Shown in pieces: positions 49,995 through 62,811 of a stretch of DNA of 64,000 nt (the first letter of the stretch is position 1; every line of letters starts with the position of its first letter). Under the pieces are notes generated by a model. That model saw only the letters and a program-made list of their open reading frames with translations, did no database searches and was not told the DNA's origin. Source of the DNA: Piromyces finnis finn (Eukaryota; Fungi; Neocallimastigomycota); assembly GCA_002104945.1 (NCBI GenBank), contig MCFH01000051.1:248001-312000 (forward strand), given 5' to 3'. The position numbers and the translations under genes were made by a program.

Positions 49995-50687
49995 TTACTT
50001 ATAACCATAAAATACGGCAAAAACAAGATATTTATAAAGTAAATCACAGGTAGAAAACCCGGCTTCTTTAAGTAATTCTATTTGATGTGGAACTGTAGTG
50101 CATTTGTCAAGTTTTGATCTTTCTTTAACCATATTAATAGCTTCTTCTTCAATACCACTTTCCTTCATTTTATTATACCATATTTTTACATTCATAGCTT
50201 CTAATTCTGGAATTGGACTAATGATTTGATCACAATTAATGAAAAGACCTCCTTCTTTTAACCATTGATAACATTTTGTGTATACACTTTTCTTTTCATC
50301 ATTTGTAAGATGATGGATAGCTAATCCAGAAATAATATAATCAAATTGGCCTTCAAAAGATTTGGAAATGGATTCATCAACATTAGCCATATCTTGACAT
50401 AAATAAGTAATATTATCATTACCCTTAAATCTTTCTTTTGACATATCTAACATTTTTTCTGTAACATCTAATAATGTAATTTTTGCTTGTGGAAACTTTG
50501 AAAGAACAATATTTGAAAAAAGACCAGTACCAGCACCAATATCAAGAATACGTGGTGATGGATTATCAGTTTTCATAAGACTTAATGGTAAATAATAAAA
50601 GTCAAAGAAACAAGGAATAATTTTTGTTCTTTGTTCATCATATTTTGTGGAAATTTTTCCAAATTGTTCTTGAATGTCGTTAGTCAT
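49995..50687 (-). CDS. Class I SAM-dependent methyltransferase, intronless, bacterial-like
   Basis: Motif I ILDIGAGTG, motif II TLLDVT, and FDYIISGLAIHHL...LKEGGLFINCDQ. Confidence 0.88.
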   Translation of the reverse strand: MTNDIQEQFGKISTKYDEQRTKIIPCFFDFYYLPLSLMKTDNPSPRILDIGAGTGLFSNIVLSKFPQAKITLLDVTEKMLDMSKERFKGNDNITYLCQDMANVDESISKSFEGQFDYIISGLAIHHLTNDEKKSVYTKCYQWLKEGGLFINCDQIISPIPELEAMNVKIWYNKMKESGIEEEAINMVKERSKLDKCTTVPHQIELLKEAGFSTCDLLYKYLVFAVFYGYK

Positions 50688-51669: not shown

Positions 51670-53382
51670 TTATAATCTACTTCTTAATAATTCAGTGAAA
51701 GCACGATAGAATGTAGTTTTACCATTAACAGCTTCTAAAGTAATTGGAATATTGGCTCCAATGAAGAAAATAGAACCTTTACAAGCATCATAAATTTTGT
51801 CCTTGAAAATAATACGGCCATCACCTTCAGTAACAATAACAATACTTGGACCTCTAATACCTCTGAAAGATTCAGATCTTTTATGAGTTGGAGATAAAGT
51901 AGTACGTAAAATAGAAAATTCTTCAATTGGTGGATTATATAAAACAGTAGTAGATGATCTTAAATATGGTTCACCAGTAATAATTTGATTTTCTGCTGAT
52001 TTGGTAGTGTAGGTTAACATGTTAACTAAAGTATTGACATCCTTGAATTTTGGTGTTAAACCAGCACGTACAACATTATCACTTGTAGCCATACATTCAA
52101 TACAATCTTAACATAAAAAAATAAAATATATTAATATTTAATGAATATATTAAAAATAAGGATTATCAATTATTATTAAGCTTTTATTAATAACGTTTAA
52201 ACTATATAACTATTTAATTTTTTTTTTTTTTTTTAAATCATAAAATATAATAAAATACAAAAAAAAAAAAAAAAATACCTCCAGAAATATAAGCATGTGG
52301 TTCATCAGCAGCTAAATATAAACCTTCTCCTGGTTTTAAGAAAACATAGTTTAATAAAATAATTGAGAAAACACCAACATCTGATGGATATTGAGCTTCA
52401 ATTCTTTTTATAACTTCATTTAATGATCCTTTAGCTGGGAATGGATCTTCACGTGATATACGTCTAACTAAACTAGATACTTGTTTCTTAACAATTTCTT
52501 GATCTTGTTCCATTAAAGATTTGTAGAGCTTCTTTAATGCTTTTCTACTTCTTTCAAGATACTTATAGTTGGTAGAAGTACCATTACTAATAACAGCCAT
52601 AAATTCATCAACAATATCCTTACCAATAGCATCAATGATTTCAGGATAATCTTCTATGTTATTTTTTATTTCTTGAAGTGGTCTAAAACCACAAAGACCT
52701 TCAAATGGGGTTAAAGCAATAGCCATTTCAGGTTTATGGTTACTATCTTTTTAAAATGATTGATTTTTAGTATTTTTAATAAAAAAAAATTAGCTTTCCT
52801 TGGAATATAAGGTAATAGAATTTACATTTATTATTACTTTTATTTTTTGAGTATTATATAATACCTTTGTAAATATCTGGATATTTTTGATATAATTGTT
52901 CAGCTAATTTTTTATCTGGGTGAGCTTGGATAGATAAGGCTTTTTGAATGGAAAGAACCTTAAATAAAAAAGGTAAATCACCATTATATTTTCTAGCAAT
53001 TCCTGGAGTAAGTAAATCTGGGTTGGCAACAACAATGTCTTTTAAATTTTCACCAGTACCCATTTTTAAAGAGGGAGCATTTGGATGAGTACCCATCCAT
53101 AACTAATATTAAAATATAATATAATGGGAAATAAATTAACTTTCTTATTATTTTGACTTTAAAAATTTTATTATCATGTAACTCGAATATAAAAATTTTG
53201 TGTTGAGAAAATTAAAATATATATATATATATATTATATACCTCAGCATAATTCTTTTTCTTATCAATAGAAATTTCACTGTAAGCATTAGAAACTAATT
53301 CTGCAACCTTACTCTTTGAACCGATTTTACCCCAAGCGTAATTTTGGGCTTTTGGTAAAAGTTGAAAAATTTTATCAGACAT
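51670..53382 (-). CDS. MPI: Mannose-6-phosphate isomerase (type I PMI), 4 exons
   Basis: QNYAWGK, YAE|[41 protein letters not shown]|[20 protein letters not shown]. Confidence 0.96.
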
Positions 53383-54702: not shown

Positions 54703-55938
54703 TTAATTGCTATAAATTAAGCATGTGGTTGATCCACTACTGTTATAATAATCATTAAGAAGGTGTTGTAAGTTACTTCTGTTAGATGATCCTGGGTCGT
54801 GAATTAAAAAGTCAGAGTACTTTAAGTTGTTTGGATCCCCATTGAAACCATAAACAACAACCCAGTGTTGATTACCAGGTTTAGAACTACCAAATGGTAC
54901 AACATATCCTTTTTTCAAAGAATTGTAAACAGTACTTAAAGATGGATTTGAGTATTTAGTAAAACCTAATCTACTATAGGTAGCACCATCTACATCACCC
55001 TCGTTAACAAATGTAATTTTTTTATTATTACACATAGTTTGAGGGGTTTCAGATTTACCATTAATTTGATTATAGGCTTCAGTTAAAGAACAAATTAAAC
55101 AGCCCCAATTACAGATAGTACATCCACTACAATTGTCATAATAAAAGCTTCCCCATTTACTATCACATTGAGCAATACGAGTGGAATTAATTGTAATACT
55201 ACCACTACTACCACCACTACTACTACCACTAGAAGTAGATGGAAGACATAATTTAACGTTTGAACTTCCTGGACAAGCATTACTAACAGTTTTTCCACTA
55301 CAGTCATTAATATTCAAGCATGTACCTTTAACGGATTTACCATTATCATAAACATTAACATCTTTAACACAACACCAAACATTTGGATCACTATCATATG
55401 GACATGAATAACTACTACCATTGTATTCATATGCATTTGCACTTCCACTTTGGCCAGAATTCATTACACATTGTGATTTACTAACACATACACCCTTTTT
55501 AGTTCCAACCCTACATGCACGTTCACTAGCTTTAGGATAGGTAGTTGGAGTAGTAGTAGAGCTTTTATAACCAGAAATACATAATTTAACCTTATTACTT
55601 CCTGGACATTCAGCAGTGTCAACAGTTTTCTTACTACCTGTACATTCACTTGTGTTTAAACATCTACCATCAAGTACTTCTTTTCCATTTTTAAGAGTAG
55701 ATACAGTTTTAATACAACACCAAACATCAGCATCTGGATCGTTTGGACATGAATACTTGCTACCATTAAATTCATAAGGCTTTGCACTTCCTTTTTGACC
55801 AGAATACATCACACATTGTGATTTTTTAAGGCATACACCTTTTTGAGTACCTACAGTACATGTATATTCACTAGCAGCACCATAACAGCCAGAAATAGCA
55901 GCAAGTAATGGTAAAAATGATTTAGAATTAAAACGCAT
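54703..55938 (-). CDS. Secreted protein with two 10-Cys modules and a C-terminal peptidase C39-like (papain-fold) domain
   Basis: Signal peptide; two ~95-aa repeats; Gly/Ser linker; then AQCDSKW, GCLICS (Cys), HWVVVYG (His) and IHDPG (Asp). Intronless. Confidence 0.8.
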   Translation of the reverse strand: MRFNSKSFLPLLAAISGCYGAASEYTCTVGTQKGVCLKKSQCVMYSGQKGSAKPYEFNGSKYSCPNDPDADVWCCIKTVSTLKNGKEVLDGRCLNTSECTGSKKTVDTAECPGSNKVKLCISGYKSSTTTPTTYPKASERACRVGTKKGVCVSKSQCVMNSGQSGSANAYEYNGSSYSCPYDSDPNVWCCVKDVNVYDNGKSVKGTCLNINDCSGKTVSNACPGSSNVKLCLPSTSSGSSSGGSSGSITINSTRIAQCDSKWGSFYYDNCSGCTICNWGCLICSLTEAYNQINGKSETPQTMCNNKKITFVNEGDVDGATYSRLGFTKYSNPSLSTVYNSLKKGYVVPFGSSKPGNQHWVVVYGFNGDPNNLKYSDFLIHDPGSSNRSNLQHLLNDYYNSSGSTTCLIYSN

Positions 55939-57063: not shown

Positions 57064-60000
57064 GGCATCAAATATTTTAAACTTTATTATTAATTTAATT
57101 AAAATTATAATACATGTAATAAAAAATTAAAAATAAATAAAAATAAAAAAAATATGTTTAAATAAACACAAATGAATAAAAATTGGGTATAATGTATTCT
57201 AGTAATTTTAATTAAAGTAAGAAAGCCACTATCATACTAAAGTATAATAATTGTATTTGACTTCCAATGGGACACCGAGCCAAAGATCAAAATTTTGTCA
57301 TGGAACAAAATTATGATCTCCATTGGTTGCGCTGGCCCTCCTGGCCTGTCTTACTGTTTCTTCAGCATTGACGCTCTTGGATGTTGCTTCAAACCTTTTG
57401 AACATTGACCATTGCTGGCCAATAGCAAAAGGCATGATTTTGGTTAGAAGTTCCGCGGTTACCGTCAAGAATGGTGTTCCTTCATTAGTACCAGATTGAA
57501 TCTGACGCTTACAAAGTTCTTTCCATTCCCTTGAATTGTAATTAATATTGTTAAAACTTCTTCCCCCAAGAAGGAATTTAAATATTTTACTGCACACACT
57601 AGAATAATCATACACATTAATATTCACCGGATTATTAGAACTATTACTATCATTAACTAAATTACTATCTAAATTAGAATTATTATCATCACTATTGCTA
57701 TCATTACTAATATTATTATTTCTATTACTACAATTGTTATTATTACTATTTCTATTATTACTATTACTACTATTGTTATTATTACTATTGTTATTATTAC
57801 TATTGTTACTATTACTATTGTTACTATTACTATTACTGTTATTGCTATCTCTGCTGACATTATCAATTTCATTATTATTGATAGGACTATTGGAATTACG
57901 TTGACTGAAAAAATTTAATAGATGGACTATAGAATCATAATGTTTAATACGGATATCTCTAAATGTTGGACAATCTAATAACCAATGTTTAATACTTTGA
58001 TCTCCACACTTGCAACATGGACAGTAGTTAGGACAAACTGGATCAACAAATTTAGCAGCTTTGGCAACTCTAGCATCCAACTTGTATCCGCTTCTTGCTT
58101 TCAATAGCCAGTAGAAGCCATAGGCAAACTTTGGGTATTCATAACATAATTTAATAAAATCTTTAGTTTCAATAAATTTATTATCATCATAATATTGCGC
58201 TTTGATTGAATTCCCTTTGAGATCTTTCCAATAAAAGTTTTTAACTGCTTTAACATCCCCATGTTTCTTTAGTTTTTTATCAAGTGTCCTACTTGATTTG
58301 CACCACGTGTATTTTCTAAATTTAGGAATGTAATTGACAAGGTGTGAGATAATACAATTTGAGTTTTTCCATTTGTTAAAACATCTAACCTGAGCTAACG
58401 CACATTTGGCTGACAATGGAGGAATATTCAAATCTTTTGAGATAGAGTATAAAGATATAAACGATACAGCTTTATGAACTCCGGCAACCCATCGTATTCC
58501 TTTGTTAACATGCTTCTGAGCAATTCTAGACCTAGCTTTGTTGGATCCAAGTAATGGTGCAAAGTATGAAACTCTGCTAATCACTTGTGAGTTAAGTACT
58601 AGCTTTTTGAAAGGAATAGGAATATTAGGATTTCTTAAGAATTTATTGACTGAAAAAAGTCCTTTCAAAACTTTGTTATTAAGAGTTTTAATAACTGGTT
58701 TAAGGGACAGATTCTTATCAAATGGAACACCAAGATAAGTATAACAATCAGTAGTTGGAATGGGTTGTCCTGCTAAGTAAAATGTTGGATCTCTCTTGTT
58801 CTGATTTTCTATTGATTCAGGACGAATCACCATCGTTGAACATTTCTGGATACCAAATTCCATTTCATTATACAATGCCCATTCATTAACTCTTCTAAGC
58901 ATCTTTTTTAAGCATCCTCTTGTTGGAGCACAAATAACTATATCATCTGCAAAAAGTCCACCACAGCATCGAGTGTCACCTAAACTGACTCCTAGATCTT
59001 CGCACTCTTTAAATATATCATTAATAAAGAGATTAAAGAGAATAGGAGAAAGAGGGCAACCTTGACGGACTCCTTTCTTCACATCAAAAGATTTCGAGAA
59101 CTGTCCATCTAATTTGACATTAGCCTTAGATGTTAAATATAAATTTTTGATGAATTGTAAACTCTTACCTCGGATTCCTAAACAATCTAATTTATGGAGA
59201 ATATTACGATCTAAAAAGGCCAAATATGTCTCTTTATTATCTAATTGACGTCTACGGCATATTTCTTGGATTGAAATGAAAAGACTGATACTTTCTTCCT
59301 TTTTTCGAAAACCAAATTGTTCAGGTCTAATGAAATTATTCTTTAAACCATATTCTGAGATTCTAGTGGTGACAATTTTGGAAATTAACTTAATACCATT
59401 ATTGATAAGTGATATACCTCGATAGTTATCACAATCTGTCAAATCTCCCTTCTTAGGAATAGAAACAATACTGGATTCATTCCATGAGTTGGGGAAGTCT
59501 CCATCCCAAATACGGTTGAATAATTTAAGAATAAAATTTAAACCATGAGCATCATTATCTGAAGTGGTATTACCAGAAGAATTATTATCTGTAGCATTAT
59601 TAGAATCATTACTTGATGGAATTAATGCTTTGTAAAATTCAATTGGAATACCATCCGGACCTGATGCTTTATAATTTGGAGTAGAGAGGATAGCTGACTT
59701 GACCTCATCAATACTAATATCTTGGTTGATATCCCACTCATCAAGCATAGGAAGTGAAAAACGTTTATTTGTTGGTTCTTCATACCAATGCTCCAAATCA
59801 AAACTTACACCACTTGGATCTGATGCATGGTTTTCGAAATGATCATGCCACACTTCTAGTTGTTCTTCCGTAGCAACAACTAATTCTCCATTTTTATTTT
59901 TAATTGGTTGAGTAATAAAGAAAGAATCTTTTCCAATTTTTGCAGTTTTCTTGATCCATTTCCAGGCCTTCTTAGGATTATGACTCTTCATATACTCACA

Positions 60001-60132: not shown

Positions 60133-60347
60133 CCCTCCTGGCCTGTCTTATTGTTTCTTCAACATTGACGCTCATGGCTGTCGCTTCAAACCTTTTGAAC
60201 ATTCTATTCCCTTGAATGATCATTAATCATTATTGTTAAAACCTCTTTCTCCAAAAAAAAGAAACTTAAATATTTCATTTGTATTAGAATATTAATACAT
60301 ATTAATATTCATTAGATTATTAGAACTATTATTAATTAAATTACTAT
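60133..60347 (-). mobile_element. Degenerate relic of the 3' coding end of the same LINE family, fused to the 5' end of copy 2
   Basis: CCCTCCTGGCCTGTCTTATTGTTTCTTCAACATTGACGCTC... aligns to 7291 onward, with substitutions, an internal deletion and AT-ward decay, ending near the 7620 equivalent. Confidence 0.8.
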
Positions 60348-60699: not shown

Positions 60700-62811
60700 T
60701 TACAAATCGAAACCTGGAATGACTTGTTCAACTGAATCTTTTTGTGGTGCAGCTGGATCTCTGCCTTCAGCAGCATCAGCAGCAGCATCAGCAGCAGCAG
60801 TGTTAGCAAAAGATTGAGAAGTTGATGGCTTTGAATCATCTAAATTAGCTTTGTTTGACTTTTTTGATTTCTTTTTATTATTTTTTTTACTATGCTTATT
60901 TCCTTCTTTATCATTACTAACTGGCATGACTGTTGGATCATAATCTTCAATATTAACTTCATTAGTATCTTGTCCAAAGGTTAAATTTGGACTTTCAGGA
61001 CTTGGATAATATGAAGCATAATTGGCAGCATAAGAATTATTCATGTCATAAGGACTAAAGTAGGAAGGAAATTGTGGTGGCATTTTGTGACCATGACAAT
61101 GCTTCATTCCCCTCATGCATTTATGATGCATATGATGACCAAATGGTGGTGGCATACCCCATGGCATTGGTGGTGGTGGACACATACCTCTCATTCCTTT
61201 CTTACATTTATGATGCATATGATGACCGAATGGTGGTGGTGGCATACCCCATGGCATTGGTGGTGGTGGACACATACCTCTCATTCCTTTCTTACATTTA
61301 TGATGCATATGATGACCGAATGGTGGTGGTGGCATACCCCATGGCATTGGTGGTGGTGGACACATACCTCTCATTCCTTTCTTACATTTATGATGCATAT
61401 GATGACCGAATGGTGGTGGTGGCATACCCCATGGCATTGGTGGTGGTGGACACATACCTCTCATTCCTTTCTTACATTTATGATGCATATGATGACCGAA
61501 TGGTGGTGGCATATCCCATGGACACATTGGTGGTGGTGGACACATGCCTCTCATTCCCTTTTTACATTTATGATGCATATGATAACCGAATGGTGGTGGC
61601 ATATCCCATGGACACATTGGTGGTGGTGGACACATGCCTCTCATTCCTCTCCTACATTTATGATGCATGTGATGACCAAATGGTGGTGGTGGCATATCCC
61701 ATGGACACATTGGTGGTGGTGGACAGTGATCCATTGATTTCATTCTCATACAATGATGTGGTGGTAGGCAGTGATCCATTGATTTCATTCTCATACAATG
61801 ATGTGGTGGTGGACAATGTCCCATAGATCTCATACCAAAACCACGATGGAAAGATGGGAATTTTAATTCATTTTCATCTTCAGAATCGCTAGAAGAACTG
61901 GTTGAACTAGATGAAGATGAAGAATTAGAACTACTTGATGAGCTAGAAGAACTAGAAGAACTAGATGAGGATGAAGAAGATGAAGAGCTAGTACTACTGT
62001 CAGATTCTGATCCAGAATTTTCAAATTCAACATCTATTGGGCAATAATATGGATATTTATAACCTGAATATTGGAACTCATCACAATCAGAACTATCAAA
62101 ATCTTCCCATTCATTTTCATCATCTGATTTCTTTCCACAAGCAGCATCAGTTGGTGGTGGTGGCATTCCTGGGCCTGGTGGTGGTGGACATCCATTTGGT
62201 GGTGGTGGCATTCCTGGGCCTGGTGGTGGTGGACATCCATTTGGTGGTGGTGGCATTCCTGGACCTGGTGGTGGTGGACATCCATTTGGTGGTGGTGGCA
62301 TTCCTGGACCTGGTGGTGGTGGACATCCATTTGGTGGTGGTGGCATTCCTGGGCCTGGTGGTGGTGGACATCCAGCTGGTCCGTGACGATGACCATGATG
62401 TGGACCATAACCCCATTTTCTCCATTTTTTCATCATTTTCCTATCCCATGGTGGACAACATGAGTCCCCATATGGACCATGACATCCTTGATGGCCTGGT
62501 GGACAGTGTAAACCACCAAAATCAAATGTACCAAAACCTGACTTTGGAACAACATCATATTTTACTTTTAAGCAAAATAATTCACCTGCTTCTTCTTCAT
62601 CTTTACCTGAATTTTTGTTTAATTTGAATTTAATATAGTTTTTACCATCATCTCCTTCAATATTAATTTCATTTAAACCTTTTTGAAGAAGTTCTAAACC
62701 ATTGTTTATATTTTCATTCTCGACAGATTCGCCACTTTCTTCATTAGAAATTTGAAGTGATTTTAATGGTAAAGTAGTCATTAATAATAAATCGTTCTTT
62801 TTTGAGTCCAT
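60700..62811 (-). CDS. Intronless low-complexity Pro/His/Cys/Met tandem-repeat protein (703 aa), unknown function
   Basis: Long ORF with host-like A/T third codon positions (CCA, CAT, TGT), an A-rich start context, and unique non-repetitive N- and C-termini. Confidence 0.8.
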   Translation of the reverse strand: MDSKKNDLLLMTTLPLKSLQISNEESGESVENENINNGLELLQKGLNEINIEGDDGKNYIKFKLNKNSGKDEEEAGELFCLKVKYDVVPKSGFGTFDFGGLHCPPGHQGCHGPYGDSCCPPWDRKMMKKWRKWGYGPHHGHRHGPAGCPPPPGPGMPPPPNGCPPPPGPGMPPPPNGCPPPPGPGMPPPPNGCPPPPGPGMPPPPNGCPPPPGPGMPPPPTDAACGKKSDDENEWEDFDSSDCDEFQYSGYKYPYYCPIDVEFENSGSESDSSTSSSSSSSSSSSSSSSSSSSSSNSSSSSSSTSSSSDSEDENELKFPSFHRGFGMRSMGHCPPPHHCMRMKSMDHCLPPHHCMRMKSMDHCPPPPMCPWDMPPPPFGHHMHHKCRRGMRGMCPPPPMCPWDMPPPFGYHMHHKCKKGMRGMCPPPPMCPWDMPPPFGHHMHHKCKKGMRGMCPPPPMPWGMPPPPFGHHMHHKCKKGMRGMCPPPPMPWGMPPPPFGHHMHHKCKKGMRGMCPPPPMPWGMPPPPFGHHMHHKCKKGMRGMCPPPPMPWGMPPPFGHHMHHKCMRGMKHCHGHKMPPQFPSYFSPYDMNNSYAANYASYYPSPESPNLTFGQDTNEVNIEDYDPTVMPVSNDKEGNKHSKKNNKKKSKKSNKANLDDSKPSTSQSFANTAAADAAADAAEGRDPAAPQKDSVEQVIPGFDL
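61111..61815. repeat. Coding minisatellite: 90-bp units (near-perfect, period visible at 61201/61291/61381/61471), older ~93-bp variants, then 45-bp units
   Basis: Encodes CPPPPMPWGMPPPPFGHHMHHKCKKGMRGM and CPPPHHCMRMKSMDH. Confidence 0.92.
62150..62376. repeat. Coding minisatellite, five 45-bp units
   Basis: Encodes CPPPPGPGMPPPPNG repeats. Confidence 0.92.

Follow-up and report, generated by a model that had tools for sequence, protein, structure and literature searches.

The question raised by this locus is what an anaerobic gut fungus does with a secreted protein that joins two cysteine-rich modules to a peptidase-like domain. The gene lies at 54703–55938 on the minus strand of a 64,000-nucleotide stretch of Piromyces finnis DNA (contig MCFH01000051.1, positions 248,001 to 312,000; hereafter the window) and is an intact, single-exon open reading frame (ORF) with an ATG start, 411 codons plus a stop and no internal stop, whose product matches a recorded P. 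finnis protein at 100%. We find that its catalytic domain is of bacterial ancestry, with its relatives among gut Bacillota sitting behind a pair of SH3b domains, and that in fungi this pair has given way to the Cys-rich module more than once. We think it reasonably probable that the protein is secreted and attacks the peptidoglycan of neighbouring bacteria as a peptidase or amidase.

The layout seen in a preliminary description of the locus stands. A signal-peptide-like leader of about 22 residues (55873–55938), judged by eye from a basic N terminus, a hydrophobic stretch and then small residues, and of the same kind on all module-bearing paralogues, precedes a first Cys-rich module (residues 23–124; 55567–55872), a Ser/Thr/Pro-rich linker (residues 125–137; 55528–55566), a second module (residues 138–235; 55234–55527), a Gly/Ser linker (residues 236–244; 55207–55233) and a C-terminal domain of 167 residues (245–411; 54706–55206), all on the minus strand and with both linkers read directly from the sequence. 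The motifs AQCDSKW, GCLICS, HWVVV and HDP, pointed out earlier as marks of a C39-like peptidase, are all present in the protein. The contrast drawn between an intron-free gene and intron-rich housekeeping neighbours holds for the adjoining PMI gene, which comprises no fewer than three exon ORFs (51670–53096) whereas the window gene is read in one frame.

What kind of enzyme is the C-terminal domain? Taken alone, the window protein scores 13.9 bits (E 0.085) against PF13529 (Peptidase_C39_2), for which the gathering threshold is 24 bits, and 19.1 bits against C70; the domain has no NCBIfam match and no match by sequence in the PDB. Its membership in PF13529 rests on transitive homology through a secreted, intron-free paralogue on contig 112 (L002, 100% identical to BCR36DRAFT_316509), in which two SH3_3 domains are followed by a Peptidase_C39_2 domain scoring 26.9 bits, above the Pfam threshold. 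PF13529 is matched by 25 of 28 aligned family members (best E 2.4e-12), C70 by 20 and Peptidase_C10 by 14, and only one touches PF03412, Peptidase C39 proper (E 0.002). The assignment to C39-like peptidases is supported for the family and for the paralogue, with the window copy alone remaining sub-threshold. Nor can the protein be placed with the bacteriocin leader peptidases proper, which are N-terminal domains of ABC exporters and cleave double-glycine leaders: it is secreted with the domain at its C terminus, and no transporter was found in its fungal or bacterial contexts.

An AlphaFold2 model built on the 28-member alignment (predicted local distance difference test score 94.5; predicted TM-score 0.91) has the papain-like alpha+beta fold expected of Peptidase_C39_2, and the window copy carries the full catalytic set in the order Gln, Cys, His, Asp. 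The putative oxyanion-hole residue Gln257 (codon 55168–55170) is invariant across 49 of 49 family members. The predicted nucleophile Cys280 (55099–55101), invariant in alignment A2, is placed at the N terminus of the central helix (model residues 36–49) and aligns with the Cys of 3ERV, a putative C39-like peptidase from Bacillus anthracis that has 18% identity (sequence E 0.11) and an insert between helix and sheet. The predicted general base His358 (54865–54867), kept in 47 of the 49 members, falls in the long strand that follows (model residues 112–123), and Asp381 (54796–54798), the third member of the predicted triad and kept in all 49, comes just past the next strand (133–136). Four fungal SH3b-bearing forms (P0004, P0005, P0008 and P0010) read GSC in place of GC at the nucleophile position and the P. 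finnis paralogue reads GCC; in some members the nucleophile position may have shifted by a residue. Separately, a segmental duplication on contig 112 at about 1,275–1,281 kb (L003/L026) has left a truncated second copy of the SH3b–C39_2 paralogue, of which only the last 118 residues survive, within a 196-residue open frame and identical to the C terminus of L002; the ORFs on its flanks were copied as well.

Where did this domain come from? A word-based protein search with the window domain returned only its orthologue in Piromyces sp. E2, and the SH3b-bearing paralogue L002 was needed as a bridge to more distant relatives. It led to two bacterial proteins with its own architecture, from an Acholeplasmatales metagenome-assembled genome (HGM09207; P0041) and a Clostridia one (P0042), whose gene neighbours encode ribosomal protein S15, PNPase, ProRS, RNase J and a dockerin protein. 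Scanning prokaryotes with one genome for each species yielded 38 relatives and none from archaea. All 38 come from gut Bacillota or Mycoplasmatota, including Acholeplasmatales, Anaeroplasma, Acutalibacteraceae, Oscillospiraceae and Lachnospiraceae, many of them from ruminants, with goat and deer among the gut samples, and nearly all consist of a signal peptide, two SH3b domains and the peptidase domain. The window domain is 37–41% identical to the best bacterial copies, which are thus roughly as near to it as its own paralogue (43–44%). Like the window protein, P0041 and P0042 are secreted, carry the catalytic domain C-terminal behind two targeting domains and have Gln, Cys, His and Asp at identical positions; unlike it, they are encoded by bacterial chromosomal genes, bear SH3_3 domains rather than Cys modules and have a single Cys in the domain where it has eight. 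L002 and its relatives in Piromyces sp. E2 and Anaeromyces robustus, which share 43–44% identity with the window copy and are likewise secreted and intron-free, belong to the same fungal clade but retain the ancestral bacterial SH3b pair.

In a maximum-likelihood tree the fungal copies, from Piromyces finnis, Piromyces sp. E2, Anaeromyces robustus and short contigs, form one clade (support 99/96) beside an SH3b-bearing Bacillota group, and the clade persists (99/97) once Neocallimastix californiae and two further proteins are added. The simplest reading of this topology is a single old transfer of an SH3b–SH3b–peptidase gene from a gut Bacillota bacterium into an ancestral lineage of these fungi, after which the gene was inherited vertically and duplicated. 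The proposal of horizontal acquisition stands as to bacterial origin, with the qualification that the event was not recent: three genera share a single clade of fungal copies, the base composition is that of a fungal gene, and a neighbouring gene is common to P. finnis and Piromyces sp. E2. A vertically inherited fungal clade had been named in advance as grounds for rejecting acquisition. The clade does exist, and we read it as dating the transfer rather than refuting it, because its named members all belong to one gut-dwelling phylum and the clade has a full three-domain architecture in common with gut bacteria. Its apparent restriction to Neocallimastigomycota among eukaryotes is to be read at the depth of word-limited, taxon-unlabelled searches. 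A phage origin was also weighed and is not supported: searching 50,697 phage records by tblastn with the fungal and bacterial domains gave no match, and IMG/VR gave a single one at 23% identity.

The idea that a bacterial peptidase was grafted onto a fungal module needs revision. The present-day layout is as proposed, and the tree suggests that the gene arrived as an SH3b–SH3b–peptidase and that the Cys module replaced the SH3b domains later. Because no C39_2 match was found by Pfam among 80 module proteins, the combination at first seemed unique to Piromyces. This was overturned when our own profile of the catalytic domain, together with a cluster name, turned up P0074 (426 residues), P0079 (333 residues) and ORY74019.1 (P0140) of Neocallimastix californiae, a 1245-residue protein in which about 15 module stretches were matched and which bears the name "Peptidase C39-like domain-containing protein". 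In ORY74019.1 Arg stands in the place of the catalytic His and the Cys has moved over by one position (GSC), so this relative may be catalytically inactive and serve in binding only. On the tree the Cys-module forms occur in three places among SH3b forms, and forcing them together costs 38.7 log-likelihood units (approximately unbiased test, p=0.019). On this catalytic domain, then, the Cys module has replaced SH3b at least twice. No stronger argument is at hand for an equivalent function of the two than such repeated replacement, and in relatives from public data, many of them on short contigs, the SH3b pair precedes the same kinds of hydrolases as the module does.

What, then, is the module? 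Each copy consists of a six-Cys submodule ending in CC and a four-Cys submodule ending in LC, with cysteines at 27, 36, 42, 64, 74, 75, 93, 99, 111 and 120 in the first and at 142, 151, 157, 179, 189, 190, 207, 213, 222 and 231 in the second. The two are 61% identical as protein and 76% as DNA over 195 nucleotides at a spacing of 345 nucleotides (repeat family D6), far beyond chance. Across 13 modules drawn from genes whose catalytic domains differ, none of the ten cysteines varies, and the variant linked to NlpC/P60 in this genome has 12. The module has no Pfam match. It occurs at no fewer than 24 places in the P. finnis genome, where, counting related contigs, it is joined to GH25, GH24, the phage-tail lysozyme PF18013 and NlpC/P60; relatives from public data add GH108 with PG_binding_3, and P. 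finnis also encodes it as stand-alone proteins of 124 residues (L005/L006). That such CP...CC modules precede NlpC/P60 and lysozyme domains in fungal secreted proteins, as the preliminary description stated, is supported by this list for the present module. Two further combinations end in a hydrophobic tail: 434-residue proteins in which the module is joined to a domain of ~300 residues without a Pfam match (L016–L018; contigs 192, 46 and 157), and 482-residue proteins in which it is joined to a weakly matching PPPDE/C97-like and RTE1-like domain (L021/L022; contigs 152 and 208).

When 1.84 billion representative proteins were searched exhaustively with a profile, only 80 clusters carrying the module emerged at E<=1e-3. 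Their Pfam partners are PF18013 (seven), NlpC/P60 and GH25 (five each), M15 and GH108 (two each), a glucosaminidase and GH24, along with chitin-binding domains (four), a ribonuclease and SH3_3; uncharacterized domains occur as partners too. The named carriers are Piromyces, Anaeromyces and Neocallimastix plus one mushroom, Mycena sanguinolenta, whose 126-residue secreted protein (P0114; module profile E 4.6e-5) is a stand-alone module; a Basidiomycota GH24 cluster matches the module by structure (TM 0.65). An SH3-like fold, suggested by an SH3_3 cluster in the Atlas (TM 0.77), was rejected when neither Foldseek nor the exhaustive VIA search returned any SH3b chain, and the match probably reflects proteins that carry the same module. 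We advance tentatively, as an idea rather less likely to be right than wrong, that the 10-Cys module, which has neither a Pfam family nor a relative of known structure, is a previously unclassified fold that would act as a fungal functional substitute for bacterial SH3b wall-binding domains, targeting peptidoglycan or the envelope and having displaced SH3b from this one peptidase family on at least two independent occasions.

A precedent for this design exists in a mushroom. Coprinopsis cinerea places a 12-Cys defensin-like domain of about 100 residues before GH24 lysozymes and also makes stand-alone defensin-like proteins (DLPs) (Kombrink et al., ISME J 2019; PMC6461984). Bacteria switch on its LYS and DLP genes, and LYS1-3 are lytic to bacterial cells (PMC6461984). 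The window protein resembles LYS1-5 in combining a signal peptide, a Cys-rich domain of about 100 residues, a linker and, here by prediction, a wall hydrolase, and the two systems are alike in that the Cys-rich domain also occurs in small stand-alone proteins. They differ in catalytic partner, a C39_2-like cysteine peptidase here and a muramidase there, in having two tandem modules rather than one and 10 rather than 12 cysteines per module, and in the setting of an anaerobic gut fungus. The possible kinship of the module with the Coprinopsis domain, which looks homologous, is judged from the published description of that domain and from Agaricales and Basidiomycota relatives.

We picture a history in which an ancestor of the gut fungi acquired a secreted SH3b–SH3b–peptidase from a gut Bacillota bacterium, and in which, in the lineage of the window gene, the two SH3b domains were later exchanged for two copies of a disulfide-locked, defensin-like fungal module. 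The modules would anchor the enzyme to the wall or envelope of bacteria, and may be antimicrobial themselves. The thiol peptidase, which should be active in the reducing rumen, would then cut a peptide or amide bond of peptidoglycan, so that neighbouring bacteria, most likely Gram-positive ones, would be weakened or lysed. We infer a wall substrate from the company that both targeting modules keep, from the Coprinopsis precedent and from the place of Peptidase_C39_2 among the catalytic domains of endolysins, where it is catalogued in phages of Gram-positive hosts (PMC8223927; also PMC13284279). In those modular lysins the same Pfam family is wall-lytic; the window subfamily differs in having no relative among the phage genomes searched.

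Several points weigh against this assignment. We found no measured activity in the literature for any member of the subfamily, bacterial or fungal, nor usable biochemistry for BtaeB, a type VI secretion system effector with a similar fold, and we found no evidence for expression of the window gene. The window copy by itself lies under the Pfam C39_2 cut-off (13.9 versus 24 bits). Its catalytic domain carries seven extra cysteines, eight against the one of its bacterial relatives, and some of these could form a disulfide that takes in the active site or blocks it. Neither the module nor SH3_3 is exclusively wall-binding, the partners of the module including a ribonuclease, chitin-binding domains and uncharacterized domains.

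The best-surviving alternative is that the protein is a secreted protease acting on a protein or peptide substrate, perhaps to degrade bacterial surface proteins or host or feed proteins or to inactivate bacterial peptides, and is not a wall hydrolase at all. True proteases are indeed among the closest folds (staphopain, SpeB, IdeS and the PCAT/ComA leader peptidases), the Peptidase_C10 and C70 matches across the family point the same way, and the missing biochemistry leaves room for such an activity. However, in bacteria and fungi alike the modules in front of the domain are without exception ones found elsewhere with peptidoglycan hydrolases, C39_2 is among the listed endolysin catalytic domains, and the ABC-transporter context of true C39 leader peptidases is absent. 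We regard a protease of this kind as unlikely, if still worth keeping in mind.

Less likely again, and in our view rather improbable, is that the enzyme part is secondary or inactive and that the defensin-like modules do the work as a binding or antimicrobial peptide-like factor. The stand-alone module genes of P. finnis and of the mushroom, so like the Coprinopsis DLPs, lend this idea some weight, as does the altered active site of ORY74019.1, from which some members of the family may be inactive. But all four catalytic residues are kept both in the window copy and in the Piromyces sp. E2 orthologue, whose catalytic domain is 75% identical, and this argues for selection on catalysis.

A methanogen target, also raised in the preliminary description, fares worse. 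Methanogens live attached to anaerobic fungi, and on this view the lysin would cleave pseudomurein. PeiR of a Methanobrevibacter ruminantium provirus, which acts on that substrate and has been assigned a C39-type catalytic domain preceded by wall-binding repeats (PMC6189367), is the top Foldseek match (8z4n, E 4.7e-4, TM 0.52). Yet PeiR is no closer to the window domain than generic clan-CA peptidases are, and a specific kinship is not supported; there is no detectable sequence relation, the window protein has none of the PMBR repeats of this archaeal virus enzyme, and our scan found no archaeal relative. We consider this target very improbable.

Bacterial contamination or a very recent transfer, which the lack of introns and the bacterial type of the catalytic domain might suggest, is refuted by a long fungal contig with AT-rich flanking spacers (10–13% GC), an intron-bearing PMI gene and a LINE-like element alongside, a coding GC of 31–34% that matches the fungal neighbours, a 414-residue orthologue in Piromyces sp. 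E2 (OUM57661.1) near the same PMI gene though in a different gene order, a Cys module of eukaryotic type and a fungal clade spanning three genera.

The surroundings of the gene hold some further features. The LINE-like reverse-transcriptase ORF (897 residues; 57298–59991, minus strand) lies 1.4 kb from the window gene. A fuller copy of 948 residues stands between two module–NlpC/P60 genes on contig 212 (L024, 3413–6259) and contains a short internal stretch that the window copy lacks, and a 71-nucleotide piece of the 3' end of the window copy is repeated at 60133–60203 with 93% identity (D8). Carriage of the window gene by a long terminal repeat element was considered and set aside, no long flanking repeats having been found. 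At 60700–62811 on the minus strand lies a 703-residue ORF made up mostly of Pro/Met/His/Cys-rich tandem repeats, seven units of 90 nucleotides and six of 45, some of them 100% identical (D3, D5). Beside the PMI gene, an intron-free ORF of 230 residues with a glycine motif like that of S-adenosylmethionine-dependent methyltransferases (49995–50687, minus strand) may be another bacterial-type gene.

Parts of this picture were known already: the coupling of a Cys-rich module to a lysin has been published for a mushroom, the Pfam family is established, and gene transfer into these fungi is documented. The main text of the two principal surveys of transfer into anaerobic fungi leaves C39, SH3, lysozyme and peptidoglycan unmentioned, and a survey of early-diverging fungi flags only a PF18013 protein of P. 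finnis. What is new here is the cysteine-peptidase partner, the Bacillota ancestry with an intact SH3b-bearing sister lineage, and the repeated exchange of SH3b for the module.

Anaerobic gut fungi seem to have built a set of secreted bacterial-wall hydrolases from bacterial parts, and the protein described here would add a cysteine peptidase to it. The occurrence of one catalytic domain behind either SH3b or a defensin-like module amounts to a natural experiment through which the module's role can be tested directly. Thiol-active lysins that work under the reducing conditions of the gut could be useful against rumen or gut Firmicutes. If the module does substitute for SH3b, it would be a eukaryote-invented targeting domain that turns acquired bacterial autolysin-type domains into secreted weapons.
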